The position numbers and the translations under genes are program-made. Positions 5,967-35,640 of a stretch of DNA of 64,000 nt are shown here, in pieces. The first letter of the stretch is position 1, and each line of letters begins with the position of its first letter. Where the stretch lies: the IMG/VR virus record IMGVR_UViG_3300047548_001122, positions 1 to 64,000 of that record; one strand, given 5' to 3'. A model generated the notes under the pieces. That model searched no databases. It worked only from the letters and a program-made list of their open reading frames with translations, and was not told where the DNA came from.

Positions 5967-6170
5967 ATGTGGAATCTTGAAGGAATGACAATTACTGGTA
6001 AATACATGGGCGAGTTCCCAGTGGCAGGTGTTGTCGAATTGTCAAGGGTGATGTACGGTGGTGGTATTTCCCATCATGTCAATTTAGAAACACCGATTGT
6101 TGTCTTTGGTGCAACACGGGACCGTATCATTCTGGAACATGCATTTATTGAAACTGTAAAGGATAATTAA
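5967..6170 (+). CDS. hypothetical protein
   Basis: AAGGA SD. Confidence 0.7.
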   Translation: MWNLEGMTITGKYMGEFPVAGVVELSRVMYGGGISHHVNLETPIVVFGATRDRIILEHAFIETVKDN

Positions 6171-6172
6171 TC

Positions 6173-6541
6173 ATGGCTTACATGAATCAAGAAAAGAAAG
6201 CAAAAATCGCTGCTACTCTGAAACCTATTTTGAAAAAATATGGAATTAAGGGTTCGCTCTCCGTTCGTAATCATACGAGCATCGTGCTGACAATTACTTC
6301 TGGCAAGGTGGACTTTTATAAAGATTATGGCGCCGATACAAAATTCGGTATTCAAGTAAACCCATATTGGTATCAGGATCATTTTACGGGTCTATCAAAA
6401 CAGGCTTTGTCTGAAATTATTCCCGCTATGTACTCTGCTGATTATTATGATAATTCGGATGCACAAGTGGATTATTTTGATACTGCTTATTATATTAGTG
6501 TAAATATTGGTAAATGGAATAAACAATATCAGGTTGTTTAA
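6173..6541 (+). CDS. conserved hypothetical phage protein
   Basis: 122-aa ORF, AAGGA SD. Confidence 0.75.
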   Translation: MAYMNQEKKAKIAATLKPILKKYGIKGSLSVRNHTSIVLTITSGKVDFYKDYGADTKFGIQVNPYWYQDHFTGLSKQALSEIIPAMYSADYYDNSDAQVDYFDTAYYISVNIGKWNKQYQVV

Positions 6542-6723
6542 TGAAAACGTTTATTGTACAATATAAATCAGATAAAAATCTGTTTAAAGGTAAGAGAGTA
6601 ATACAAGCTTACGAATTAACAGAAGCACAAAATAAATTTTTAAACTGGCTGAAAACTCAGCCAGTTTATTCCCATATGTGGCAGTTAAATTTTGAACTTG
6701 AAGAAATACAGGAGATAAGATGA
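6541..6723 (+). CDS. hypothetical protein
   Basis: coupled ORF. Confidence 0.55.
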   Translation: MKTFIVQYKSDKNLFKGKRVIQAYELTEAQNKFLNWLKTQPVYSHMWQLNFELEEIQEIR

Positions 6724-6917
6724 ATTTTATGATTATTAATTTTGTTTTGGGTGTAGTGAATATTTTTATTGCTGGTATGAATTGCAGTATGATAATCACC
6801 AGAAAATCTGATGGTATAAAAATTGATTATAAAGATTATCTAGCAACAATTTTGCCTGTTACTATTGGTCTTTATCTTTTGGTCAGTGTTATTGGCCAAG
6901 CATCAACCAATTCTTAA
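6720..6917 (+). CDS. small two-TM protein
   Basis: AGGAG SD, hydrophobic. Confidence 0.6.
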   Translation: MNFMIINFVLGVVNIFIAGMNCSMIITRKSDGIKIDYKDYLATILPVTIGLYLLVSVIGQASTNS

Positions 6918-8466: not shown

Positions 8467-9300
8467 ATGCCGAATTGGTGCAACAATTCTATCACCGTAA
8501 AAGGTGACGTTAAATCAATTGATGAATTTGAAAATTTTCTAAACGAAAAAAATGGTAAAGAATGGTTTGACTTCATTCTGCCTTGTCCTGAAGAATTGAA
8601 AAACGCCGAAGCTTCTTTCCATAAACCATCAAATCAAGAATTGGTCGAAAAATACGGCCATTCTGATTGGTATACATGGTCGTTAGAAAAATGGGGTTGT
8701 AAATGGAATTGTGATGCTCAAGATTGGGATCGAGATGGGGATACGATTACATTTTGGTTCGATTCGCCTTGGGGTCCTCCAATTAGTCTTTACGAAGAAA
8801 TGGAAGAACATGGTTTTAATGTAGAAGCTTACTACCATGAAGAAGGTATGGCTTTTGTAGGAAAATTTACGACAGAAGATGGTGACGATAATTTCGAATA
8901 TTCTGATTTAGAATCGCTTGATGATATTCCAGAAGATATTGTTGAATATTGGGGTCTCCGTGAAATGATCGAAGATCGTATGAGTGAATGGGAATCTGAT
9001 ATGGATTGGGATTCTTCTGACGAACCCGAAGATTTTACTACAGATACCGCAAAAGATTGGATTAAAGGTCTACTGAAAGATGGTGTAGTTGAAGTGACCT
9101 TTACAAAGACTGATGGTACTGAACGAGTGATGAAATGTACTCTTAAAGATGAAGTGATTTCTGAACATTGGATTCCAAAAGAAACAGAATCACAAAGAAA
9201 ATATTCTGAAGATGCTCTACCCGTTTTTGATGTTGAATCTAAAGGTTGGCGCTCATTCCGTTGGGATTCAATTAAAGAAGTAAATTTTAGTTTGGAGTAA
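8467..9300 (+). CDS. DUF1281/YubB-like N-domain fused to WYL_2/SH3-like C-domain
   Basis: MPNWCNN, WGCKWN, FDSPWGPP; C-terminal VTFTKTDGTERVMKCTL, WRSFRWD. Confidence 0.7.
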   Translation: MPNWCNNSITVKGDVKSIDEFENFLNEKNGKEWFDFILPCPEELKNAEASFHKPSNQELVEKYGHSDWYTWSLEKWGCKWNCDAQDWDRDGDTITFWFDSPWGPPISLYEEMEEHGFNVEAYYHEEGMAFVGKFTTEDGDDNFEYSDLESLDDIPEDIVEYWGLREMIEDRMSEWESDMDWDSSDEPEDFTTDTAKDWIKGLLKDGVVEVTFTKTDGTERVMKCTLKDEVISEHWIPKETESQRKYSEDALPVFDVESKGWRSFRWDSIKEVNFSLE

Positions 9301-9306
9301 AATGTG

Positions 9307-9383
9307 GGGCCGGAAGCTTAAGTGGTATAAGCGTCCGACTCATAATCGGGTGACAGTGAGTTCGAATCTCACCCGGCCCACCA
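9307..9383 (+). tRNA. tRNA-CAT (Ile2-like or Met)
   Basis: cloverleaf, loop CT-CAT-AA, CCA. Confidence 0.9.
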
Positions 9384-9417
9384 TTAACAATATGACAACT
9401 AGTTATTGAGGTAATAA

Positions 9418-9470
9418 TGTTGTATTTGCCCAACAAACCGCTTGACAAAAAATATTTTTTACTATATACT
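9418..9470 (+). promoter_or_regulatory. sigma70 promoter with upstream TGTTG-N8-CAACA palindrome
   Basis: TTGACA 9442-47, 17 nt, TATACT 9465-70. Confidence 0.75.
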
Positions 9471-9516
9471 ACACATATATTAAATTTTGCAGTAAAAGAT
9501 TACTAAATAAAGTACT

Positions 9517-9642
9517 ATGATGAAAAACACTTTTAACCCCGCAATATGTTTAGATAAGGAAATGCCATTTACATGGCAGGCCTCAGTACGCTCTATTAAT
9601 ACAAGCGGACTTGGCTACCACGATAAAGGGGTTTTTGTATAG
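9517..9642 (+). CDS. 41-aa putative attenuator leader peptide containing all 20 amino acids
   Basis: MMKNTFNPAICLDKEMPFTWQASVRSINTSGLGYHDKGVFV-TAG; late-promoter-like CTAAATA at 9503-09; no SD. Confidence 0.65.
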   Translation: MMKNTFNPAICLDKEMPFTWQASVRSINTSGLGYHDKGVFV

Positions 9643-9669
9643 ATTATTGATGTAACAAATAAACCATAC

Positions 9670-9709
9670 AAAAACCTCAAGATCGAAAGACTTGAGGTTT
9701 TTTTGTTTT
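9670..9709 (+). terminator. intrinsic terminator competing with an antiterminator
   Basis: AAAAACCTCAAG/CTTGAGGTTTTT stem, GAAA loop, U tract; 9628-40 pairs with 9666-78. Confidence 0.85.
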
Positions 9710-9818
9710 ATACGCTAATCGCAACGAGGGTGATGCCAGCGTACAATAAAATGGCTAAAAGGGCGGCACTGAGGATGAAAATACCGGCGAGAACGGTTTA
9801 GTAAAATTCAGATTATGT

Positions 9819-9892
9819 TGGGGTGTGGTGAAGTGGTATCACAGCGGATTTTGATTCCGTTATTCTAAGTTCGATTCTTAGCACCCCTGCCA
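9819..9892 (+). tRNA. tRNA-Gln(TTG)
   Basis: cloverleaf, CCA. Confidence 0.92.
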
Positions 9893-9974
9893 AATAGAAG
9901 AATACTCTTTGAGGTCTTGGTCGTTACCTGCGTAGCAAAAACGGCGGCAGAGTATTCTTCTATTTGGGTAAAAT

Positions 9975-10048
9975 CTCGGTGTGGTGTAATGGCAGCACAG
10001 CAGTCTCCAAAACTGTTAGTTGCGGTTCGAGTCCGTACACCGAGGCCA
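9975..10048 (+). tRNA. tRNA-Trp(CCA)
   Basis: cloverleaf, CCA. Confidence 0.92.
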
Positions 10049-10153
10049 TGATTATGTTAACCAATAAAAGGAGAATAATCATGGGGCAATGTCAGTTTAT
10101 ATTTTAGTTGTACTGTTTTTGATTTACGTACATAAAAAAATTTAAGGAACTAT

Positions 10154-10396
10154 ATGAAAGACTATACGCCAAAAATTGCAAAAAAAGATTTAGAACATGG
10201 TGCTTATTATAGTGGCAGTTGCCGTAATGCAAACGAAGCACGATGGAATGCGGAGCGTAATGTTTTTGTACATTGGCGTACTAAGTTCAACAATACATTC
10301 TTAGAAGAAATTCGTCATCCAGAAGATGACCAGATGTTTGATGTATTTGTAGTTGAAGAAAAATTGGAAAATCCTACTAAGGAAATTCCCTTTTAA
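10154..10396 (+). CDS. hypothetical phage protein
   Basis: AAGGA SD, 80 aa. Confidence 0.75.
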   Translation: MKDYTPKIAKKDLEHGAYYSGSCRNANEARWNAERNVFVHWRTKFNNTFLEEIRHPEDDQMFDVFVVEEKLENPTKEIPF

Positions 10397-10405
10397 GTAA
10401 TCGAT

Positions 10406-10481
10406 GGTGTCTATAGTGTAGTGGTCTGCATAGGGTGCTGTGAACGCCTTGGTATGAGTTCGATCCTCATTAGACACCCCA
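10406..10481 (+). tRNA. tRNA-His(GTG)
   Basis: G-1, C73, CCA. Confidence 0.92.
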
Positions 10482-10486
10482 ATTTC

Positions 10487-10561
10487 GCAGCGGTAGCTTA
10501 AAGGTTAAAGCGTCCGTCTCTAAAACGGACAATGTGGGTTCGATTCCCACCCGCCGCACCA
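10487..10561 (+). tRNA. amber suppressor tRNA (anticodon CTA)
   Basis: TCCGT-CT-CTA-AA-ACGGA anticodon arm; A3.C70 mismatch; A73; CCA. Confidence 0.85.
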
Positions 10562-10580
10562 TTTTTTATAGGAGAGTAAC

Positions 10581-10616
10581 ATGGAGAAACTTGTTGCATA
10601 GATTCGACCGCCATAA
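10581..10616 (+). promoter_or_regulatory. uORF MEKLVA-TAG-IRPP-TAA
   Basis: AGGAG SD at 10570-74; hand-translated. Confidence 0.55.
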
Positions 10617-10665
10617 ATTTCTGTTAGTCTTTTTTACTTTTTAAATTAACTAACAGGAGAATAAT

Positions 10666-11091
10666 ATGTGCATAGAATTAAAAATCAAATCTAAACATTT
10701 AAGTTTAGAATCGAAAGTAATTCGTTTTGAAGAACGTAAACTTCAAAAGCAAGTTAAGTGGTTGTATGAAAATGATCCTACAAAAGATTCCGATTCTTAT
10801 TCGGTGATGAGTAAGAGTGATTATTGGAAAACAGTTTGGAAATTAGGGTCATTGACTGACCACAGAAAACGTGTTGTTGGTACCGAAAACAGGGCTACAT
10901 TTTTAGCAAGAGCTTATATTGAAGGTGTTCCTTATAATAAAGTTGAATCTAAACGTAAGGATGAAAAACACTATGAGTTCAATTGTAAAGTTCTTCCTAG
11001 AGTGTTAGATATGGTTAGGAAATATCATCCTGTTTATGAAGTAAGAAAAAATATTACACTTGATGTATTGAAAGACTGGTGTAATATGTAA
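10666..11091 (+). CDS. basic conserved hypothetical protein with hairpin-occluded SD
   Basis: 141 aa; AGGAG 10655-59 pairs within 10618-28/10649-59. Confidence 0.8.
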   Translation: MCIELKIKSKHLSLESKVIRFEERKLQKQVKWLYENDPTKDSDSYSVMSKSDYWKTVWKLGSLTDHRKRVVGTENRATFLARAYIEGVPYNKVESKRKDEKHYEFNCKVLPRVLDMVRKYHPVYEVRKNITLDVLKDWCNM

Positions 11092-11182
11092 GTGTCTCAC
11101 CCTTGTATACGGTGTATAATAGGACAAGTTGTATACAGTCTACAGACCCCGACTTCGGATCCTCGGTCGAAAAATGAGGATC

Positions 11183-11274
11183 CATATTGAAATACATTGT
11201 ATTCAGTTCGACTCTGATAGTTTCGTGTATTCCGGATATAACACGGAGCATAGCCAACAGTGTGTTTCAATATG
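11183..11274 (+). ncRNA. stem-enclosed, permuted tRNA-like RNA
   Basis: 18-bp closing stem, T-arm TCAG-TTCGACT-CTGA first, then a hairpin. Confidence 0.5.
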
Positions 11275-11348
11275 CATCGTTAGCTCAGCGGTAGAGCAAT
11301 GCCCTTACAAGGCGGAGGTCCGCGGTTCGAACCCGTGACGATGTACCA
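11274..11348 (+). tRNA. tRNA-Val(TAC)
   Basis: cloverleaf, CCA. Confidence 0.9.
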
Positions 11349-11354
11349 GTTTAA

Positions 11355-11428
11355 CTCGGTATGGTGAAATGGTATCATGCGTGCTTTGGGAGCATGTGGC
11401 GGAAGTTCGATTCTTCCTACCGAGACCA
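11355..11428 (+). tRNA. tRNA-Pro(TGG)
   Basis: cloverleaf, CCA. Confidence 0.92.
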
Positions 11429-11444
11429 ATTAAAGGAGAGTGAT

Positions 11445-11609
11445 ATGTCTAGGACTTTTCGTAAAGAACGTAAGACGACCAAAAAAGTAAGAGATGGTCA
11501 TAGACAATTTGTTTCTGTTAGTTGTGAACACCATGGAGGTTGTCCATGGTGTGAAAGAAATCGTTTGATTAATCAAAAAAAACTTAATCAAACAAAGTTT
11601 TATGAATAA
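11445..11609 (+). CDS. 54-aa basic protein with SCEHHGGCPWC motif
   Basis: AAGGAG SD before ATG 11445. Confidence 0.7.
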   Translation: MSRTFRKERKTTKKVRDGHRQFVSVSCEHHGGCPWCERNRLINQKKLNQTKFYE

Positions 11610-11610
11610 T

Positions 11611-11690
11611 GGGGATAGGGACTGCTTGGGGTGGTCGCCTCACTTGCAATGAGGATATTCAGTTCGGTTCAAATCCGAATATCTCCACCA
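11611..11690 (+). tRNA. tRNA-Ala(TGC)
   Basis: G3.U70, CCA. Confidence 0.9.
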
Positions 11691-11699
11691 TTATACTAT

Positions 11700-11773
11700 G
11701 CTCTCATAGTTAAGTGGTATAACGCATCCTTGGTAAGGATGTATTACAAGTTCGATTCTTGTTGAGAGCACCA
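11700..11773 (+). tRNA. tRNA-Thr(GGT)
   Basis: cloverleaf, CCA. Confidence 0.92.
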
Positions 11774-11774
11774 T

Positions 11775-11850
11775 GCAACTTTAGCTGATGTGGTCATAGC
11801 GGCGGCCTGAAGAGCCGTTGAACCAGGTTCGATTCCTGGAGGTTGCACCA
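11775..11850 (+). tRNA. tRNA-Phe(GAA)
   Basis: cloverleaf, CCA. Confidence 0.92.
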
Positions 11851-11852
11851 TT

Positions 11853-11926
11853 CCTTCCGTAGCTCAAAGGTAGAGCAATCGATTGATAATCGATAGACAG
11901 TGGATCGTTACCATTCGGAAGGACCA
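11853..11926 (+). tRNA. tRNA-Ile(GAT)
   Basis: cloverleaf, variant T-loop ATCGTTA, CCA. Confidence 0.9.
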
Positions 11927-11933
11927 AGTTTTT

Positions 11934-12010
11934 GCCCCGGTGACGGAACTGGTATACGTGTTGGTCTTAGAAGCCAAATTTTAGGAGTTCGACTCTCCTC
12001 TGGGGCACCA
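11934..12010 (+). tRNA. tRNA-Leu(TAG), lacking long variable arm
   Basis: cloverleaf, CCA. Confidence 0.88.
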
Positions 12011-12011
12011 T

Positions 12012-12087
12012 CGGTCTTTAGTAAAATGGATGATTACGGCGGGCTACGGACCCGCAGGTGGGAGTTCGATTCTCTCAGGACCGGCCA
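12012..12087 (+). tRNA. tRNA-Arg(ACG)
   Basis: cloverleaf, CCA. Confidence 0.92.
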
Positions 12088-12184
12088 TATTGAAACACAT
12101 TTTGTATGCTAAACGGCACAGCCGCGGAACTTGAACTCCGTAGATGTGAGGTTCGAGTCCTCACCGAAGTGTGTTTCAATATGG
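12085..12184 (+). ncRNA. stem-enclosed tRNA-like RNA without CCA
   Basis: 20-bp closing stem; D-like arm, 8-nt anticodon-like loop ACTTGAAC, 6-bp T-arm with TTCGAGT. Confidence 0.55.
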
Positions 12185-12272
12185 AAGTGTGGCAGAGCCC
12201 GGTTTAATGCACCTGACTTGAAATCAGACGAACAGAAATGTTCCGTGAGTTCGAATCTCACCGCTTCCGCCA
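12183..12272 (+). tRNA. tRNA-Ser(TGA)
   Basis: long variable arm, CCA. Confidence 0.93.
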
Positions 12273-12461
12273 TATTGTGTTGCAACTAATCTGAGGGAGT
12301 CCACGTTAGCCTCAGTTAAAATGACAAAAATCGGGGCCAATTAAAGGAAATTAAATGTTAATGTTAGTTTTAAAAATATTTTTATATTGGATTGGATTAG
12401 GTATTTTTATTTCGTCATTGATGTTTAGTTGTTTAATGTTTGCAAAAGTTTGTGAAACTAC

Positions 12462-12551
12462 GGTGAATTGGCTGAGTGGCTTAAGGCAGCGGTTTGCTAA
12501 ACCGTCGAAGGTTTAAATCTTCCATTGGTTCGAATCCAATATTCACCGCCA
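12462..12551 (+). tRNA. tRNA-Ser(GCT)
   Basis: long variable arm, CCA. Confidence 0.93.
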
Positions 12552-12567
12552 TAATTTAGGAGTAAAT

Positions 12568-13131
12568 ATGCCAGCAAATTTTTTAGTTAGTGATACACAT
12601 TTCGGGCACGCTGGTGTATGTAAATTCCTGCGTGATGATGGAACAAAACTTAGACCATGGGATAATCCAGATGAGATGGATGAAGAAATGGTTAAGCGTT
12701 GGAATGAAACAGTAAGGCCTAACGATAAAGTTTACCATCTTGGTGATGTTGTGATTAATCGCAAAGCACTTAAAATACTTTCAAGACTGAATGGTGATAA
12801 AGTGCTGATTAAAGGTAATCACGATATCTTTAAACTTGGAGATTATACGGAATATTTTCGTGACATTCGTAGTTATCATGTAATGAATGGAATGATTCTT
12901 AGTCATATTCCTGTACATGAAGAAAGTCTAGCACGATTTGGAACGAATATTCATGGACATCTTCATTACAACAGAGTGAAGAAAGATGGAGTAATTGATC
13001 CGAGGTATTGGTGTGCTTGTGTTGAGCATACTGATTATCGGCCAATTCTTTTTGAAGATGTTATTAAAAGAATTAAGGAACAAGGTGGGACTGTAGGGTT
13101 TAAAAACGGAAACGGTCCCACTGTAGATTAA
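12568..13131 (+). CDS. calcineurin-like metallophosphoesterase
   Basis: DTHFGH, HLGD, GNHD, HGHLH. Confidence 0.9.
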   Translation: MPANFLVSDTHFGHAGVCKFLRDDGTKLRPWDNPDEMDEEMVKRWNETVRPNDKVYHLGDVVINRKALKILSRLNGDKVLIKGNHDIFKLGDYTEYFRDIRSYHVMNGMILSHIPVHEESLARFGTNIHGHLHYNRVKKDGVIDPRYWCACVEHTDYRPILFEDVIKRIKEQGGTVGFKNGNGPTVD

Positions 13132-13132
13132 T

Positions 13133-13210
13133 GGTAAGGTGGCTGAGTGGTCCAAAGCGACAGTCTGCAAAACTGTAAAACCATCGGTTCAAATCCGATC
13201 CTTACCTCCA
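13133..13210 (+). tRNA. tRNA-Cys(GCA)
   Basis: U73, CCA. Confidence 0.92.
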
Positions 13211-13246
13211 TTAACAATTTGACAACAAATGTTATCAGGAAGATAA

Positions 13247-13387
13247 CGTTGTATTTTGGCAACAGTGCTTGACAATTGTACTGGTTCCTGTATAATAGAC
13301 TTTGTTGAGTGATTGATGCAGTACGGAAAGAAACGATGTTGTATAAAAACAACACCGCTTGACAAAACGATTAAGTGGTGTTATAAT
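13247..13387 (+). promoter_or_regulatory. two tandem consensus sigma70 promoters, each with an upstream palindrome
   Basis: TTGACA 13269/TATAAT 13291; TTGACA 13359/TATAAT 13382. Confidence 0.8.
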
Positions 13388-13542
13388 GTTGTTTCAGTAG
13401 TTGAGTTTCTTTAACAAATTGCGAATTAAAACAGGTGTGAGCGACCTGTCTCTGAATAGAGTTTGACAAGGTTTTGGTGTGGCAAAGACTTCGGCACCAT
13501 GTAACAGTCTGTACCTTGTTAGTTCTAAATTTTTAGTTTTAT

Positions 13543-13617
13543 GTTCCGTGGGACGGCTGGTGTGGTCAACTGCCTTTCAAGCAGTGCAGATGGGATCGAA
13601 ACCCATACGGAACTCCA
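13543..13617 (+). tRNA. tRNA-Glu(TTC)
   Basis: variant D arm and T-loop ATCGAAA, CCA. Confidence 0.85.
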
Positions 13618-13719
13618 TATTGAAGTGTATTCTGAAACCTGTAGAGTCGTACAGCGGAATGCATAGTCAGGGTATAAGCTGGTATCTGGGAGATACGACC
13701 TGAGTATACTTCAATATGG
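13615..13719 (+). ncRNA. stem-enclosed structured RNA
   Basis: CCATATTGAAGTGTATTC/GAGTATACTTCAATATGG closing stem. Confidence 0.5.
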
Positions 13720-13897
13720 TGAAGTAACAAGGTTAGGATTTGGTCATAATTGTGGCTGTGCGCTGAAATAACCTATAATGCGAAACCCGAAAGGGTATCC
13801 TTGTGGCAAGCAGAGAGTTGGCGTGGCGACCAATCACCATAATCATTTTTTTTATAAGGAGACCTGTCATGGATAGTGACAAGAGTGATAAGATTAT

Positions 13898-13973
13898 GGG
13901 GCTATAGTCAAACGGTTAAGACAGCGGACTTTTAATCCGTCAGGTCAGGGTTCGAATCCCTGTGGCCCCACCA
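13898..13973 (+). tRNA. tRNA-Lys(TTT)
   Basis: cloverleaf, CCA. Confidence 0.93.
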
Positions 13974-14049
13974 ATCTGAAAGTACACTGTGTGTCAGACT
14001 GCTTCGGCGAATTGATAAACATTAAGTTGAGATAGTGTACTTCCAAATT

Positions 14050-14124
14050 GGTTCCAAAGTGTTCATGGACGCACATATGCCTGTCACGCATAAAGAAGGG
14101 GATCGTTACCCCTTGGAACCGCCA
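14050..14124 (+). tRNA. tRNA-Asp(GTC)
   Basis: variant T-loop ATCGTTA, CCA. Confidence 0.88.
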
Positions 14125-14234
14125 AGATGCACACCTTCGCTTTGAGGTGTGGCAGGATAGCCTCTCCTTCCTAGGATGGATGCTTCTCAGACTGCAACTA
14201 GAGTTCTCGCAAAAGAACATAGCAGAGTTTCAAT

Positions 14235-14313
14235 TCCGCAGAACCCGAGCAAGGTGCATGGGCGTGACTGTTAATCACTGGCTAGTAGAGTTCGATTCTC
14301 TAATGCGGAGCCA
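14235..14313 (+). tRNA. tRNA-Asn(GTT)
   Basis: cloverleaf, CCA. Confidence 0.85.
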
Positions 14314-14316
14314 AAA

Positions 14317-14502
14317 TTCCGGTTACTACTTTCCTGAAAGTAGCGTGTGGCGACGAGAATTGTCCCGGTGGCTATGGCACCGTTAGCGCATACGTAAGCA
14401 GACAACATAGCAACGTGGACACTACGTAGCAAACCGCAATTAGTGTTCGGACAGGGAAACAACTCCAGCTTAGGGGCGACCGTGGAAAGCGTGGCCTAAG
14501 CA
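14317..14502 (+). ncRNA. structured ncRNA, manA-motif-like (copy A)
   Basis: multi-hairpin, GC-rich; 3' domain GGACAG.G.AAC.ACTC.AG shared with copy B. Confidence 0.45.
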
Positions 14503-14505
14503 AAT

Positions 14506-14696
14506 TTAATTGTGTTATTATGGAAAATTCCAGTGATCGCTGGATAGTGCTCCCCAAAATGATTTGATGTCCGGATTATTCAAGTCTATAGGGTGTGACT
14601 GACGAAAAACCTATGACGATAGGAACAATAAGAGCAGTCCTACAAAATGCAAACCCTAGGCGGTGAATCCTAGGTATAACGTGATAACACAATTAA
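14506..14696 (+). ncRNA. stem-enclosed multi-hairpin RNA of unknown family
   Basis: TTAATTGTGTTATT/GATAACACAATTAA closing stem, four internal hairpins. Confidence 0.45.
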
Positions 14697-14703
14697 GTTT
14701 TTT

Positions 14704-14796
14704 GGGTGTCTTGATGCTATGGCGTGTGCATCCCCGGACTGTAAATCCGGTCCCTTGTGGTAAACATTCGCGGTTCGAATCCGTGGACACCCACCA
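14704..14796 (+). tRNA. tRNA-Tyr(GTA), extended D stem
   Basis: CCGGA-CT-GTA-AA-TCCGG, CCA. Confidence 0.87.
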
Positions 14797-14802
14797 AGTT
14801 TT

Positions 14803-14884
14803 GCAGGATAAGGAAAAAGCATATGCCCCTATGGAGCATGTTATACTAGTTGCTATTCAGGTTCGATTCCTGAATCCTGCACCA
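14803..14884 (+). tRNA. tRNA-like gene lacking a D stem, 9-nt anticodon loop
   Basis: perfect acceptor GCAGGAT/ATCCTGC-A-CCA and T arm. Confidence 0.55.
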
Positions 14885-14886
14885 GA

Positions 14887-15123
14887 ATCCTCCTTACCGT
14901 TCAGTGGAGTAACGGCGGTACTTGCAGTCGAAAGTGTGCAAGCGTCATTGTGTTGCGAAAAACACTCGGCAGAACAGAAATCCTAGGATAATGCCGCAGA
15001 GACCCGCTCTAATGGGTGCCTTATGAAAAGACTGTTCCTGTGGTCGGCCGAGCCACAGTGTGAATAATCGGATGGACAGTGTAACTACTCAGTCTAGGGC
15101 TTATGGGAATAAGTAGCTAGACA
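14887..15123 (+). ncRNA. structured ncRNA, manA-motif-like (copy B)
   Basis: shared 3' domain with copy A. Confidence 0.45.
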
Positions 15124-15135
15124 TCACACATAAAC

Positions 15136-15166
15136 GCTTGACAAGAGTTTTTATGTGTGGTATAAT
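15136..15166 (+). promoter_or_regulatory. sigma70 promoter for GOLLD-like RNA
   Basis: TTGACA 15138-43, 17 nt, TGG-TATAAT 15161-66. Confidence 0.8.
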
Positions 15167-15194
15167 AGATGTTTAATTGGGAGTATAGTCTCAT

Positions 15195-16040
15195 TAGAAT
15201 AAGTGGCGTGAGCCACCCAAAGCAGAAGTGTCCTACACACCTGCGCCAGTGATGGTTCATCTATACAAGCCTGCTCACTAGGGCGACCTAGCGATCACTG
15301 ATAAGACCGGTGGTTGTAACAATGAAGCTGGTGTAGTGGAAAGAATTGTATGCTCAAGCGCCGCAAGGTAACGCAAGTATACAGAGAGTAACGGGTGGTG
15401 CTGACCTCACTACAAAACCAATCAGTTAGTTGGTATGAGAAAGGGTAGTGCATTTGTCCAAGGTGTTGCAACCAAGGGCTTATGTGCAGTATTAATGGTT
15501 TATGGAACTGCCGTGAGGCGTTACATGAATCGTGAAATACTACTGAGTAGCCGGCAGGCAAAAGGTACGTGGTGTGTTGTATGATGTGGATTAATAGTTC
15601 ATGTCGCAACAGGAGCAGCACATCATAGTAGGTTCGATATAGCGTAATGGTAACGCGATTGCCTTTAGAGCAATTGACTGTTGGTTCGAGTCCAACTATC
15701 AAATAAAAAAAGCAAAGACTGCTCCGGTTAGTAGTGAAAGGTATCTAATACTTGGCTCGCAAGAGAATCAAGTCTGACGTAGCTCGCAAGGTGAAATCAG
15801 TTTATATCGGAAGATTCGTAAGGTGTTAGCGCACTTGAATGGCTCGCAAGGTCAACGGGTAAGAAGGTGTAGAGTAACTATTAACGACAAGTCTAATGCC
15901 TGACTTTCAAAACGGCGATACTGGTGATAGACGATGATACCGCAAGGGTTGTCGTGGATGTCGTGAGAAGTCTGACCCGCAAGGTCTTATATAATGCACG
16001 AAGTGTCACTATGGAAGGTGTAATCTCAGCCGACCACTTA
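15195..16040 (+). ncRNA. GOLLD-like large ncRNA
   Basis: about 850 nt, non-coding, many GCAA-capped hairpins, E-loop-like AGUA/GAA motifs, embedded tRNA, tRNA-cluster context. Confidence 0.75.
15633..15704 (+). tRNA. tRNA-like element with TTA (ochre) anticodon inside the GOLLD-like RNA
   Basis: ATTGC-CT-TTA-GA-GCAAT; D and T arms intact; C3.A70 mismatch; no CCA. Confidence 0.6.
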
Positions 16041-16164
16041 CTAAAGCACATTATTCTTTCAAGAGGTTCTTAGTCGTACCTGTAGTTTGTTTTAGTGTGC
16101 TTCAGTAATAAAATTCGCGTGTGAGGCGAGAGGAGAGTTCGTACTCTCCTCAAACTTTTTCAAT

Positions 16165-16242
16165 AGCGGGGTAGAGAAGAGGTCGTTTTCGCCGGTCTCA
16201 TAAGCCGGAAATCGTGTGGTTCGAATCCCACCCCCGCTACCA
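16165..16242 (+). tRNA. tRNA-Met(CAT), initiator-like
   Basis: AGCGGGG acceptor, CT-CAT-AA, CCA. Confidence 0.85.
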
Positions 16243-16248
16243 ATATAT

Positions 16249-16323
16249 GGTAGTGTAGCATAACGGTAGTGCGCCACCTTCATACGGTGTTCGGTGTAAG
16301 TTCGATTCTTACCACTACTACCA
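16249..16323 (+). tRNA. tRNA-Met(CAT), elongator-like
   Basis: TT-CAT-AC loop, CCA. Confidence 0.85.
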
Positions 16324-16342
16324 GCATAAGTAGTGTATAATA

Positions 16343-16416
16343 GCCCTTTTAGTTAAATGGTATAACGCTTGACTTGTAATCATGAATTGGTGGTTCGATT
16401 CCATCAAGGGGCACCA
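16343..16416 (+). tRNA. tRNA-Thr(TGT)
   Basis: cloverleaf, CCA. Confidence 0.9.
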
Positions 16417-16432
16417 ATAACAAGGAAGTAAA

Positions 16433-16600
16433 ATGACAGACGGTGGTAAAGGAAGTAAGCCAAGACCATTTTCGGTTACACAAGATAAATTTTCTGATAA
16501 TTGGGATAAAATATTTAAGAATGAATATCAGGATGAATTGAGTACCGAAGATGCTGTGCTAGATGCTTTTGAAGATAAGAAAGAAACAAAGCGGGATTAG
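16433..16600 (+). CDS. 55-aa small phage protein (MTDGGKGSKPRPFSV...NWDKIF)
   Basis: hand-translated, AAGGA SD. Confidence 0.65.
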   Translation: MTDGGKGSKPRPFSVTQDKFSDNWDKIFKNEYQDELSTEDAVLDAFEDKKETKRD

Positions 16601-16664
16601 TTTAATGGTAAAACTACAGATTTCCAATCTGTTGTTATCAGTTCGATTCTGATATCCCGCTCCA
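16591..16664 (+). tRNA. tRNA-Gly(TCC)
   Basis: cloverleaf, CCA. Confidence 0.93.
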
Positions 16665-16670
16665 AAATTT

Positions 16671-16744
16671 GCGGAATTAGTTTAATGGTAGAACGAAACC
16701 TTGCCAAGGTCTAGACACCAGTTCGATTCTGGTATTCCGCTCCA
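16671..16744 (+). tRNA. tRNA-Gly(GCC)
   Basis: cloverleaf, CCA. Confidence 0.92.
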
Positions 16745-16748
16745 AATC

Positions 16749-16823
16749 CTGGCTGTCGTATAACGGATAATACAAGAGACTTCTAATCTTTAAATCGGGG
16801 TTCGATTCCCTGCAGCCGGACCA
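16749..16823 (+). tRNA. tRNA-Arg(TCT)
   Basis: cloverleaf, CCA. Confidence 0.9.
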
Positions 16824-16826
16824 AAT

Positions 16827-16918
16827 GCCCCTGTAGTTTAACGGAAAAACAGCGGATTTATATCCCGTGTGCAACAGATAATTGGCCAATGTGGGTTCGA
16901 CTCCCGCCGGGGGCACCA
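16827..16918 (+). tRNA. tRNA with TAT anticodon (Ile AUA) and long variable region
   Basis: GCGGA-TT-TAT-AT-CCCGT, 22-nt variable region, CCA. Confidence 0.75.
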
Positions 16919-16938
16919 ATAACAATAAGGAGAATGTA

Positions 16939-17409
16939 ATGCGTAAAATCAATATGGATGAAGTTAAAACATTCATTGAATCTCAAAGTCCAGAAACTAA
17001 AATTTATATCGGATGCGACTCCGAACGATTTAAATTGGACGGAGTTTGGTACGCGGATTACATTCTCGCAATCGTAGTGCATATTAATGGAAATAATGGT
17101 TGTAAACTTTTTGGTGAAGTGGTGCGTGAACGAGACTACGACCAAAAGAAAAACAAACCTAGATATCGTTTGATGAATGAAGTTTATAAAGTATCGGAAC
17201 TATATTTGAAACTTGCTGAATGTATTGGTGACCGCCATGTTGAAGTCCATTTGGATATTAATCCTGATGAACATCATGGAAGCAACTGTGTGATGCAAGA
17301 AGCAATTGGATATATTCGTGGTACATGTAACGTAATTCCTTTAATTAAACCTAATGCATTTGCAGCATCTTATGCAGCAGATAGATTTAAAGGATTGCGA
17401 GTAGCTTGA
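16939..17409 (+). CDS. RNase H-like YkuK/DUF458 family protein
   Basis: IYIGCDS, RLMNEV, VHLDIN, KPNAFAASYAAD; AAGGAG SD. Confidence 0.8.
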   Translation: MRKINMDEVKTFIESQSPETKIYIGCDSERFKLDGVWYADYILAIVVHINGNNGCKLFGEVVRERDYDQKKNKPRYRLMNEVYKVSELYLKLAECIGDRHVEVHLDINPDEHHGSNCVMQEAIGYIRGTCNVIPLIKPNAFAASYAADRFKGLRVA

Positions 17410-17413
17410 ATTT

Positions 17414-17454
17414 TATAAATAGACACTCCAGATAATCTTTCAGGAGTGTCTATG
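17414..17454 (+). promoter_or_regulatory. T4 late promoter plus SD-sequestering hairpin
   Basis: TATAAATA 17414-21; ATAGACACTCC/GGAGTGTCTAT. Confidence 0.8.
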
Positions 17455-17904
17455 AAAAAGATAAGTGCAACGGATCAAGAAATAATTGAAGTATCCAATA
17501 CTTCACAATCAGCATCACAAGCAGCACAAATTTTAGGTATTCAATATGGTACATATCGAGTTCATGCTTTACGATTGGGAGTATTTAAACCCAACCAGCG
17601 TGGATTAGGTAGACCAAAACCTAAAAAAGAAGGTAACGGAAAAATTTCACTGAAGGATATCTTTGAAGGAAAACATCCATCATATCAATCTAATAAATTG
17701 AGAAAAAGATTGTTCAGTGAAGGTTATAAAGAGAAAAGGTGTGAGATATGTGGAGTAACTGAATGGAACGGGAAAGAATTATCGTTTCAGCTTGAACATA
17801 TCGACGGAAACTGTTATAATCATACTTTCGATAACTTAATGATTATTTGTCCGAACTGTCATTCACAGACGGACACATATTGTGGTAGAAATAAAACGAA
17901 ATAA
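17452..17904 (+). CDS. free-standing HNH homing endonuclease
   Basis: CEICG, LEHIDGN...N...NL..ICPNCHSQT. Confidence 0.9.
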   Translation: MKKISATDQEIIEVSNTSQSASQAAQILGIQYGTYRVHALRLGVFKPNQRGLGRPKPKKEGNGKISLKDIFEGKHPSYQSNKLRKRLFSEGYKEKRCEICGVTEWNGKELSFQLEHIDGNCYNHTFDNLMIICPNCHSQTDTYCGRNKTK

Positions 17905-35044: not shown

Positions 35045-35212
35045 ATGTTTTACGCTCTTTTCGTAACATTTGTTTTGAACGGTAATCCTCCTGTAGAACA
35101 GAGATGGAAAGCATATGAAACGTTTGATGAATGTTGGGAAGCAGCTACAATAATAGTAAGAGGTAGAGATAATTTTACCGCAAGGTGTGTTTTAGTTGAA
35201 AGTAAAGAATAG
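35045..35212 (+). CDS. 55-aa hypothetical protein
   Basis: hand-translated MFYALFVTFVLNG...ARCVLVESKE. Confidence 0.55.
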   Translation: MFYALFVTFVLNGNPPVEQRWKAYETFDECWEAATIIVRGRDNFTARCVLVESKE

Positions 35213-35540
35213 AATTGTTGTAATCCCTTCAAAGTGAAGGCATTCTGGACGTGGGTTCGACTCCCACCATCTCCACCAAAAGCGCAGATAGACGCTATGT
35301 TGGCTTCAGATCGCAACTAGCGAACATACGCGAGACAGGTTCCCACTACGAACTTCTGTGCTTTTGATGGGGATGACCTGGTTTCGACAGGGTGAGATAA
35401 TGGAGAAGGCAACACGGTAGGCGATGACCGTAAATCAAGCAAAAATAGTAACTGCAAACGATGAAAGTTACGCTCTAGCAGCTTAAGCTCTAGATGAGGT
35501 TTCGCAAGGTGTGCCTTATAATCAAAACACCTTGCACCAA
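35213..35540 (+). ncRNA. ssrA: circularly permuted two-piece tmRNA; tag ANDESYALAA (35454-35486)
   Basis: T arm and CATCTCC-A-CCA (ends 35278) precede GGGGATG..GGTTTCGAC (starts 35369); G3.U70. Confidence 0.93.
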
Positions 35541-35640
35541 ATCACTTAGAGTAGATTAATGATTTTCTCTACTTGACTTTTGATTACATTATGATATATA
35601 ATTTCACATGGCTATTGGCCATGACAACTAGGAGAAAACT

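Follow-up and report, generated by a model that had tools for sequence, protein, structure and literature searches.

A putative attenuator with a leader ORF for all 20 amino acids ahead of phage tRNA genes

We have found a short ORF in front of the tRNA genes of a phage which encodes all 20 amino acids in 41 codons and ends inside an RNA switch. We have also found 50 distinct versions of this element in uncultured phage contigs: 45 of them encode all 20 amino acids in 31-47 codons. On the basis of sequence comparison alone, it is most likely a ribosome-mediated transcription attenuator, which reads general aminoacyl-tRNA supply and turns up transcription of the tRNA genes when the supply of almost any amino acid falters. 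No prior description of such an element was found.

The element and its parts

The window analysed is a stretch of 64,000 nt (positions 1 to 64,000 of IMG/VR record IMGVR_UViG_3300047548_001122). Its features are collected in Table 1. The leader ORF uses 32 distinct codons, as described in the initial annotation, and it is the only one of 43 ATG-ORFs of 38-44 aa in the window with all 20 amino acid types. Taken alone it is a roughly 0.5% event; its relatives make it far stronger. The two strands of the antiterminator form 13 pairs with one G.U. Their duplex energy is -16.8 kcal/mol, against -7.4 for shuffled downstream sequence, and the helix is found in the minimum-energy fold of the transcript cut before the 3' arm of the terminator. 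A simple terminator scan missed the terminator only because its loop is 9 nt long. There is no Shine-Dalgarno sequence upstream of the ORF.

Two points of the initial annotation had to be corrected. It gave the downstream tRNA genes as covering all 20 amino acids; ARAGORN finds 27 tRNA genes downstream, which cover 19 amino acids plus two suppressor-type anticodons (CTA, TTA). No tRNA-Asn was found. It also did not mention the near-consensus sigma-70 promoter, which matches 11 of 12 consensus positions.

Table 1 Features of the element and of the tRNA array in the window
Position	Strand	Feature
9307-9383		tRNA-Met, upstream of the element
9442-9470	+	Sigma-70-type promoter (TTGACA, 17-nt spacer, TATACT), 46 nt upstream of the ATG; preceded by a short inverted repeat, TGTTG 9418-9422 / CAACA 9431-9435
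9503-9509	+	CTAAATA motif 7 nt upstream of the ATG; possible T4-type late promoter that would give a leaderless transcript
9517-9642	+	Leader ORF, ATG to TAG, 41 codons plus stop
9628-9640	+	Region 2, GGGGTTTTTGTAT: 5' strand of the antiterminator; last four codons and first base of the stop codon
9666-9678	+	Region 3, ATACAAAAACCTC: pairs either with region 2 (antiterminator) or with region 4 (terminator)
9670-9704	+	Intrinsic terminator: A-tract 9670-9674; 7-bp G+C-rich stem CCTCAAG 9675-9681 / CTTGAGG 9691-9697; loop containing GAAA; T7 9698-9704
9705-9818	+	Conserved spacer before tRNA-Gln, with a covarying hairpin (ACCG 9783-9786 / CGGT 9794-9797)
9819-13210	+	First 15 tRNA genes (Gln to Cys) plus small ORFs; no consensus promoter separates them from the attenuator
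13211-16918	+	Rest of the tRNA array; further strong promoters at 13269, 13359 and 15138

A family of leaders ahead of tRNA arrays

The 50 distinct leaders were recovered by three independent routes: the peptide itself, a DNA pattern in the ORF body and a DNA pattern made only of regions 2 and 3. Both patterns fix some residues, so divergent members without the property could have been missed. Hits of the first pattern in G+C-rich bacterial contigs were inspected and discarded as chance matches. In 58 of 58 copies with enough sequence a same-strand tRNA starts within 400 nt of the leader stop, and in 56 of 58 it is tRNA-Gln(UUG). Arrays reach 27 tRNAs. The ORF is intact in all 50 versions and its length differences are in whole codons.

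Five leaders lack one or more amino acids: three have 19 types, one has 18 and one has 13. The exact probability of complete coverage by chance, with M, G, V and C granted for free, is 4e-4 at 31 aa and 1.5e-2 at 43 aa; even with uniform composition it is 1.5e-3 to 5.7e-2. Other short ORFs in the same loci reach all 20 in 3 of 355 cases, and sliding windows of real proteins in at most 0.06% of cases at 39-43 aa. In a genealogy-aware simulation, with 257 changes and site-specific rates and residue pools, all 34 tips kept 20 types in 0 of 4000 runs; the mean was 7.9 tips. Individual residues move while the set stays complete. Cys is at position 11 in the leader of the window, at 8 and 11 in L003 and at 8 only in L059 (relatives are designated here by L numbers). 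His, Tyr, Glu, Asp and Pro also sit at different places in different clades. The initial annotation noted that the codons sample different isoacceptor boxes. Leaders cover 85-96% of the anticodons of the array, always at least the mean of synonymous resampling, but no single case is clearly significant (P from 0.04 to 0.56).

One relative is of particular interest. The L100/L020 phage has only seven tRNAs (Thr, Pro, Glu, Leu, Arg, Met and Cys) and a leader of 25 codons. In this leader 16 of 20 core codons encode those seven amino acids, against 31% expected (P=8e-6), and 12 of 20 are cognate to those anticodons, against 20.5% expected (P=1.3e-4). Relatives with 4-tRNA arrays (L022, L026) have no leader.

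The pattern of selection indicates that the peptide sequence matters little, while the nucleotides and the composition matter. The leader has a pN/pS of about 0.7 (range 0.27-1.38), against 0.16-0.44 for the flanking gene. Variable columns by codon position 1/2/3 are 7/14/11, whereas an ordinary protein-coding gene should vary most at the third position. Synonymous sites are about six times more conserved than in the flanking gene (0.06 against 0.39, L001 versus L006). This conservation and an invariant GGCC/GGCU helix inside the ORF point to additional functions at the RNA level, which the attenuator model proposed here does not explain.

Promoter and start signals

A consensus promoter with a 17-nt spacer is present in 43 of 48 family elements; both hexamers are invariant in 11 close variants of the window element. 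In 31 of 48 elements, found in sister clades, the -10 hexamer ends 6, 7 or 9 nt before the ATG, which implies a leaderless mRNA. Three elements have 31-34-nt leaders with purine-rich Shine-Dalgarno sequences, one of them with a GTG start. In the clade of the window the start signal would rest on the possible T4-late-like motif or on SD-independent initiation. Relatives carry TATAAATA (L003) or CATAAATA (L059) at the same position, the position of this motif is conserved in three variants, and the phage has T4-like baseplate genes. However the motif is not enriched in the window: there are 8 copies on the + strand against about 13 expected.

The RNA switch

Region 2, together with the next 10 nt, is invariant in 11 close variants. 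Across the family the helix 2:3 is paired in 84.8% of cells, against 27-57% when the partner is slid by 1-3 columns. Five pairs changed on both sides, for example GC in 17 sequences and UA in 9 at columns 187/234; in the second clade column 234 pairs with region 2 but not with region 4. The covariation score is 0.181, against 0.101 for shuffles (0 of 500 reach it). The mean duplex energy is -16.2 kcal/mol, against -8.1 for shuffles, and all 52 elements reach P<=0.05. The helix is present in the minimum-energy fold of the transcript cut before region 4 in 19 of 19 representatives; in five of them it persists in the full-length fold. The terminator is paired in 91% of cells, with four pairs changed on both sides across the family and two compensatory pairs among close variants.

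We also looked for a region 1 which could pair with region 2. An AACCCC:GGGGTT pairing is found in the minimum-energy fold of the window element, and similar (H/N/R)-K-P codon pairings appear in some clades. Family-wide, however, the best 1:2 duplex averages -10.7 kcal/mol, against -10.0 for shuffles, and only 6% of elements reach P<=0.05. The AACCCC of the window (9535-9540) is not distinguishable from chance, and we rejected region 1 as a general feature.

Proposed mechanism

We propose, with fair confidence, the following mechanism, in which translation of the ORF, the activity of the terminator and the response to stalling are inferred. A strong promoter starts a short transcript whose first feature is the leader ORF. 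With no ribosome on region 2, helix 2:3 forms as soon as region 3 is transcribed; region 3 is also the 5' flank and lower stem of the terminator, which cannot fold, and RNA polymerase reads on into tRNA-Gln and the following tRNA genes. If a ribosome translates the whole ORF quickly and sits on region 2 or the stop codon, region 3 is free to pair with region 4 and transcription stops. A shortage of almost any charged tRNA would slow the ribosome upstream of region 2 and raise transcription of the tRNA genes, while an ample supply would shut it down: a demand-controlled feedback on the tRNA supply. No region 1 is needed.

This agrees with the initial annotation, which proposed that the leader senses the loss of almost any tRNA: every part of that model which sequence comparison can test held up in sequences it had not seen. 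Its link to anticodon-nuclease defence is speculation. Its caveat that Tyr and His codons lie near the antiterminator is right and wider than stated. A ribosome stalled within about 4 codons of region 2 would cover it; Val lies only there in 33 of 49 leaders, and His only there in the clade of the window. At most 18-19 amino acids can be sensed, and part of the complete set comes free from region 2, which reads Gly-Val-x-Val. The first 15 tRNA genes are the stretch most plausibly controlled by the leader; for the rest of the array, control is at most partial. Only 3 of 48 elements (L114, L115, L120) have a strong promoter between the terminator and the first tRNA.

A broader reading is somewhat more likely than not: phage tRNA arrays may be expressed on demand, with a leaderless mini-ORF as a single test of the whole aminoacyl-tRNA pool. 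The arrays would switch on whenever any pool drops, whether from phage codon demand, decay of host tRNAs after host shut-off, starvation or tRNA-cleaving defence systems, and the codon content of the sensor would co-evolve with the set of tRNAs it controls. Almost nothing is known about the regulation of phage tRNA arrays, and when phages use their tRNA genes is an open question. The element is about 190 nt long and self-contained, and it could become a compact reporter of aminoacyl-tRNA supply.

Comparison with known systems

The leader-peptide attenuators of amino acid biosynthesis operons (trp, his, leu, thr, ilvGMEDA and pheA of enterobacteria) also have a short leader ORF, an intrinsic terminator before the regulated genes and a mutually exclusive antiterminator, one strand of which is covered by a ribosome at the end of the ORF. 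Stalling at hungry codons gives read-through, and the leader codons match what the downstream genes supply. However those leaders use runs of one to three amino acids. In the leader of the window there are no runs and each amino acid occurs one to three times; complete coverage, or in L100 the enrichment for seven amino acids, takes their place. In the absence of region 1, lack of translation should give read-through rather than super-attenuation. Most members are leaderless rather than SD-led, and the regulated genes are phage tRNAs. Classical attenuation, known for 50 years as a one-amino-acid device, would gain a general translation-capacity sensor, on by default.

T-box riboswitches address the same question, whether charged tRNA is sufficient, by choosing between a terminator and an antiterminator. 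A T-box binds one specific uncharged tRNA directly and needs no translation; no T-box or specifier-loop structure was found here. In a scan of positions 9000-17500 with the Rfam models no hit overlapped 9440-9820 on the + strand; the only overlap is a weak minus-strand SurA match below threshold (17.3 bits, gathering score 100).

Attenuators of antibiotic-resistance genes, such as Bacillus bmrCD/bmrB and vmlR, appear to respond to slowed ribosomes in general through a similar short ORF, but to ribosome-targeting drugs, and apparently no requirement for a complete amino acid set has been described for them. In the pyrBI attenuator of E. coli, with a leader of about 44 codons, the closely following ribosome probably prevents termination, the signal being UTP-dependent polymerase pausing; here the ribosome is predicted to promote termination. 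The tRNA clusters of T4-like and T5-like phages, including the T4 stable RNAs C and D, appear likewise to be arrays interspersed with small ORFs and other stable RNAs, but we found no leader-peptide control described for them. Among GenBank phages, searches with the element and with 25 kb around it gave only tRNA matches, and tblastn with a family peptide gave only noise. KVP40-like Vibrio phages share only tRNA-Gln with this family and have no such element next to it. No cultured phage was found to carry the family.

Alternative explanations

The best of the alternatives, although unlikely, is a translated attenuator whose signal is overall translation activity (ribosome availability, initiation capacity or host shut-off) or which acts as a timer of infection, the full codon set being only an average sample of translation. 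The architecture would be identical: with no region 1, any failure to load or move a ribosome gives read-through. Leaderless starts depend on 70S availability, as is established, and isoacceptor-level matching is weak. On the other hand, a general speed sensor needs only length or a few slow codons, yet coverage is kept complete even at 31-32 codons, and the leader of the 7-tRNA phage is enriched in exactly its seven amino acids.

It is still less likely that the ORF is a stand-alone gene for a small protein, for example an early host-takeover or anti-defence peptide, with the amino acid set and the pairing as side effects. The unit has its own promoter and terminator, JGI gene callers predict it as a hypothetical protein in public metagenomes, a core such as C-S-M-L...W-Q-A-D-Y-R...G-F-I-G is fairly conserved within the second clade, and three elements are followed by a separate promoter for the tRNAs. 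However the pN/pS values are against it, peptide identity between clades is only about 30% and only four columns are invariant. A protein fold gives no reason to keep all 20 residue types while moving them about, nor does it explain the covarying helix 2:3, the invariant nucleotides past the stop codon or the matched composition in the 7-tRNA phage.

A non-coding RNA, either a stable small RNA like those in the T4 tRNA region or the structured 5' leader of the tRNA precursor, would fit the conserved synonymous sites, the conserved hairpins inside the ORF, the fold of 9478-9710 (more stable than shuffles, z = -2.7), the missing Shine-Dalgarno sequence of the ORF in the window and the presence of a GOLLD RNA in the region and of a tmRNA elsewhere in the window, but it is very unlikely, since the ORF stays intact despite 257 or more changes, an ATG sits exactly at the predicted transcription start in 31 elements and behind a Shine-Dalgarno sequence in three, the stop codon keeps its place at region 2, amino acid coverage has no meaning for an untranslated RNA and no Rfam family matches the element.

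The spacer before tRNA-Gln is also conserved: 75% of its columns are invariant and two pairs of its hairpin changed on both sides. No strong promoter lies in it in the window, and it may be a pre-tRNA 5' leader.

Organization of the leader region

We will start with the sequence itself, which is as the initial annotation described it: a short ORF with all 20 amino acids, whose end can pair with a sequence that overlaps a strong intrinsic terminator. The features are collected in the table below. Two points differ from that description. It had not mentioned the near-consensus sigma-70 promoter which precedes the ORF, and it had assigned to the downstream array tRNA genes for all 20 amino acids. 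The array covers 19 amino acids and also holds two suppressor-type tRNAs, while one tRNA-Met lies upstream of the element. No tRNA-Asn was found in the window, whereas L003 has one in the corresponding region (related loci are designated here by an L number). A tRNA-like sequence with a good acceptor stem, T-arm and CCA end but an aberrant middle is present in the array; it scores 23.5 bits against the Rfam tRNA model, below threshold, and it is not called by ARAGORN.

The contig belongs to an uncultured T4-like myovirus of 214 kb, with 35% G+C and baseplate genes of the gp6/gp7/gp8 types. It has no close relative among GenBank phages.

Position of the features found in the window
Feature	Position	Strand	Description
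Promoter cassette	9418-9470		Short inverted repeat (GTTGT...ACAAC) directly upstream of a (C)GCTTGACA -35 box
Sigma-70 promoter	9442-9470		TTGACA-17-TATACT
Leader ORF	9517-9642		ATG...TAG; 41 codons, 32 different codons
Hairpin around the Trp codon	9563-9578		TGCCAT...ATGGCA
Helix inside the ORF	about 9579-9582 / 9610-9613		GGCC...GGCU; encloses a second stem
Region 2	9628-9640		GGGGTTTTTGTAT; last 13 nt of the ORF
Region 3	9666-9678		ATACAAAAACCTC; complementary to region 2 with one G.U pair
Terminator, A-tract	9670-9674
Terminator, stem	9675-9681 / 9691-9697		GAAA-containing loop
Terminator, T7	9698-9704
Spacer between terminator and tRNA-Gln	9705-9818	+	114 nt
tRNA array	9819-16918		27 tRNA genes
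First block of the array	9819-13210		15 tRNAs
Inverted repeat between tRNA-Gln and tRNA-Trp	9891-9908 / 9949-9966	+	18 bp, perfect; CAAATAGAAGAATACTCT ... AGAGTATTCTTCTATTTG
Mini-ORF just after tRNA-Trp	10068-10107	+	MGQCQFIF*; strong Shine-Dalgarno sequence AAGGAG at 10068-10073
80-aa ORF	10154-10396
tRNA, anticodon CTA	10487-10561	+	Amber-suppressor type; labelled 'Pyl' by ARAGORN
Promoter cassette	13245-13296		As in 9418-9470
Promoter cassette	13335-13387		As in 9418-9470
Further promoters	13269, 13359, 15138
tRNA-like sequence	14803-14881	+
Promoter before the GOLLD RNA	15138-15166
GOLLD RNA	15569-16032	+	Rfam RF02032; 205.7 bits, E=1.6e-57
tRNA embedded in the GOLLD RNA	15632-15705		Anticodon TTA; ochre-suppressor type
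Terminator after the GOLLD RNA	16130-16151
tmRNA	35186-35577	+	Tag peptide ANDESYALAA

Taken alone, a 41-codon ORF with all 20 amino acids is only moderately unusual. With the protein composition of the phage itself the chance is about 0.5%, in sliding windows of its real proteins it is 0.02%, and among other short ORFs in the fetched loci it is 3 of 355. One such ORF in 64 kb could be luck. The test that matters is whether relatives keep the property.

Related elements in other phages

Homologues were found by three independent routes. A peptide search returned three variants of 41 aa from public metagenomes, each predicted as a gene by the source. Relatives of the flanking 277-aa gene led to more distant phages with the same layout. 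Finally, two DNA patterns were scanned through the viral and metagenome collections: one was taken from the ORF body, the other consisted only of regions 2 and 3, so that it put no constraint on the rest of the ORF. After removal of chance matches in unrelated G+C-rich contigs, 50 distinct leader peptides remained. Both patterns fix a few residues, so this census is not unbiased.

In every copy with at least 250 nt of downstream sequence (58 of 58), a tRNA gene on the same strand starts within 400 nt of the stop codon of the leader. In 56 of 58 it is tRNA-Gln(UUG). The arrays reach 27 tRNAs. No cultured phage carries the element. A peculiarity of one relative, L002, is that its homologue of the flanking gene (6001-6886) appears to be frameshifted: the ORF ends at 6636, while similarity continues to 6886. 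This phage has no tRNA array after it.

Amino acid coverage of the leaders

Most leaders contain all 20 amino acids in a very short length, as it is shown in the following table. The shortest complete leaders are those of L113, with 31 aa, and of L098 and L087, with 32 aa.

Number of amino acid types in the 50 distinct leaders
Amino acid types	Leaders	Length
20	45	31-47 codons
19	3	31-34 codons
18	1	28 codons
13	1	25 codons

In order to estimate the chance probability we granted for free Met, which is the start, and Gly, Val and Cys, which region 2 tends to encode. The exact probability of the rest is then 4e-4 at 31 aa and 1.5e-2 at 43 aa. Even with the most favourable (uniform) composition it is 1.5e-3 to 5.7e-2. 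The lineages are very different: peptide identity between the window's clade and the others is about 30%, and only four alignment columns are invariant. Individual residues move from one place to another. Cys is at position 11 in the window, at 8 and 11 in L003, and at 8 only in L059, another related locus. His is near the C-terminus in the window's clade and near the N-terminus elsewhere. Tyr, Glu, Asp and Pro also change place.

We also simulated the evolution of 34 peptides along their minimum spanning genealogy (257 changes), using the observed site-specific rates and drawing new residues only from those seen in the same column. All tips kept 20 types in 0 of 4000 runs; on average 7.9 of 34 did. 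Shared ancestry therefore does not explain the pattern, and we consider it practically certain that complete amino acid coverage is under selection.

Coverage at the level of isoacceptors is high (85-96% of anticodons), but it is not significantly above synonymous resampling.

Reading frame and start signals

The reading frame appears to matter. The ORF is never interrupted, its length varies in whole codons and its stop stays at or just after region 2. Among 48 distinct elements, 43 have a consensus sigma-70 promoter with a 17-nt spacer. In 31 of the 48 the -10 hexamer ends 6, 7 or 9 nt before the ATG, so that the transcript should begin at or within about 3 nt of the start codon, as a leaderless mRNA. 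Three members have instead 31-34-nt leaders with purine-rich Shine-Dalgarno sequences. One of these uses a GTG start, and only from that start does the ORF hold all 20 amino acids.

In the window's clade the start signal is uncertain. The promoter is 46 nt upstream of the ATG. An NTAAATA motif (CTAAATA, TATAAATA or CATAAATA) sits 7-8 nt before the ATG. This is the place where a T4-type late promoter would give a leaderless RNA, as the initial annotation suggested; such a promoter is possible.

Selection on the peptide sequence is weak. Among 11 close variants the variable columns fall 7/14/11 on codon positions 1/2/3. The pN/pS ratio is 0.27-1.38 (median about 0.7), against 0.16-0.44 for the flanking gene. 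Synonymous sites are much more conserved than in that gene (0.06 against 0.39 for the comparison of the related loci L001 and L006). The constraints therefore act on nucleotides and composition, not on a protein fold. The low synonymous divergence, the invariant GGCC/GGCU helix (columns 124-127 / 161-164 of alignment A5) and the neighbouring hairpins inside the ORF are not explained by the mechanism proposed below; they suggest further RNA functions, such as a polymerase pause site. This helix shows no covariation because its bases never vary, partly because our search pattern required them.

The alternative RNA helices

The two helices in which region 3 can take part, either with region 2 (antiterminator) or with region 4 (terminator), were compared on an alignment of 34 distinct elements.

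Pairing and covariation of the two helices in 34 distinct elements
Measure	Helix 2:3 (antiterminator)	Helix 3:4 (terminator)
Cells forming a standard pair	84.8%	91%
Same, partner slid by 1-3 columns	27-57%	17-74%
Pairs changed on both sides	5	4
Covariation score (shuffled mean)	0.181 (0.101; 0 of 500 shuffles reach it)	0.212 (0.106; 0 of 500 shuffles reach it)

The base at alignment column 234 pairs with region 2 (T-A in the window's clade, G-C in the others), but in the second clade it does not pair with region 4. So helix 2:3 is selected in its own right and is not an echo of the terminator. There are also examples specific to some clades: GGGTTTTTGAA / TTCAAAAACCC in L041, a T-to-C change in region 2 matched by a G in region 3 in L058, and GGGG / CCCC in the L034 group.

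The 2:3 duplex averages -16.2 kcal/mol, against -8.1 for shuffled downstream sequence, and all 52 elements reach P<=0.05. In 19 of 19 representatives the transcript cut before region 4 has helix 2:3 in its minimum-energy structure, and in five of them it persists even in the full-length fold. On the other hand, a region 1 complementary to region 2 is not supported: the best 1:2 duplex averages -10.7 against -10.0 kcal/mol, and only 6% of the elements are significant. The device has three regions, and without a ribosome on region 2 the default is read-through.

Proposed mechanism

We propose that RNA polymerase starts at the promoter and a ribosome loads on the 5' AUG. If all codons are read promptly, the ribosome reaches region 2 and the stop codon before region 4 is made, and it keeps region 2 single-stranded inside the ribosome. 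Region 3 then pairs with region 4 and transcription ends at the T-tract. If any charged tRNA is scarce, the ribosome waits upstream, helix 2:3 forms and the polymerase reads into the tRNA genes. The parts, their conservation, their covariation and their position are apparent in the sequences, whereas the coupling and its outcome are inferred from the established behaviour of trp/his-type attenuators. The interpretation given in the initial annotation is supported by comparison with sequences on which it was not based, and this attenuator model is probably correct, although it rests on sequence evidence without experiments. A link to anti-phage tRNA nucleases, also proposed there, is speculation.

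The geometry limits what can be sensed. A ribosome stalled within about four codons of region 2 would itself cover region 2. If only the codons upstream of that limit are counted, the leaders hold 18-20 types: Val is missing in 33 of 49, and His is missing in the window's clade. Part of the complete set is therefore supplied for free by region 2, read as Gly-Val-x-Val, and those amino acids should not be sensed.

Only 3 of 48 elements have a strong promoter between the terminator and the first tRNA, so that in most phages read-through is the obvious route to the first block of tRNAs. In the window the promoters that follow this block serve the rest of the array, including the GOLLD RNA.

A leader matched to a small tRNA array

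The relative L100/L020 has only seven tRNA genes in the about 14 kb of downstream sequence available: Thr-UGU, Pro-UGG, Glu-UUC, Leu-UAA, Arg-UCU, Met and Cys. Its leader has 25 codons and 13 residue types, and all seven amino acids are present. Of its 20 core codons, 16 encode those seven, against 31% expected from the genes of that phage (P=8e-6), and 12 are cognate to those very anticodons, against 20.5% expected (P=1.3e-4). This is one case, noticed after the fact, but it is what a sensor matched to its own array predicts. It argues for feedback on the supplied tRNAs rather than a mere measure of translation speed. Relatives with four-tRNA arrays directly after the flanking genes have no leader.

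Comparison with known systems

In this model the element works like a leader-peptide attenuator. It has a short ORF, a terminator and an exclusive antiterminator within reach of the ribosome, which are three defining features of that family. It differs by the absence of a run of regulatory codons, by the lack of support for a region 1, and by the nature of the regulated genes, which are not biosynthetic. No Rfam leader or T-box model matches it. In the literature searched, which is incomplete, we found no description of a leader peptide or attenuator ahead of phage tRNA genes, nor of a leader ORF selected to contain all amino acids; this is only absence of evidence. Attenuation by a leader peptide is well known, but its combination with a complete set of amino acids and a tRNA array appears to be new.

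Other features of the tRNA region

The spacer between the terminator and tRNA-Gln is as conserved as the leader ORF. It has a hairpin with two compensatory pairs (ACCG/CGGT becoming GCTG/CAGC). In most clades other than that of the window a conserved motif, (G)TTCTTTAAAAATTTG, lies just upstream of tRNA-Gln (L023, L024, L018, L034, L041, L087, L116 and L117). It is not a convincing promoter, but it may be a processing or pause signal. The inverted repeat which fills the spacer between tRNA-Gln and tRNA-Trp is largely conserved in L003 and may be a processing site. The mini-ORF which precedes the 80-aa ORF is also conserved in L003, as MGQCQF*.

The promoter cassette is repeated in the window. 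The string TAACAAT(A/T)TGACAAC follows both tRNA-Met (9384) and tRNA-Cys (13211). The same cassette follows the terminator of the leader in L114, L115 and L120, and it may be an operator for a regulator.

The GOLLD RNA appears to be its own promoter-to-terminator unit inside the tRNA array. The phage also encodes a tmRNA: with the near-complete tRNA set and the proposed leader sensor, it carries several translation-maintenance RNAs.
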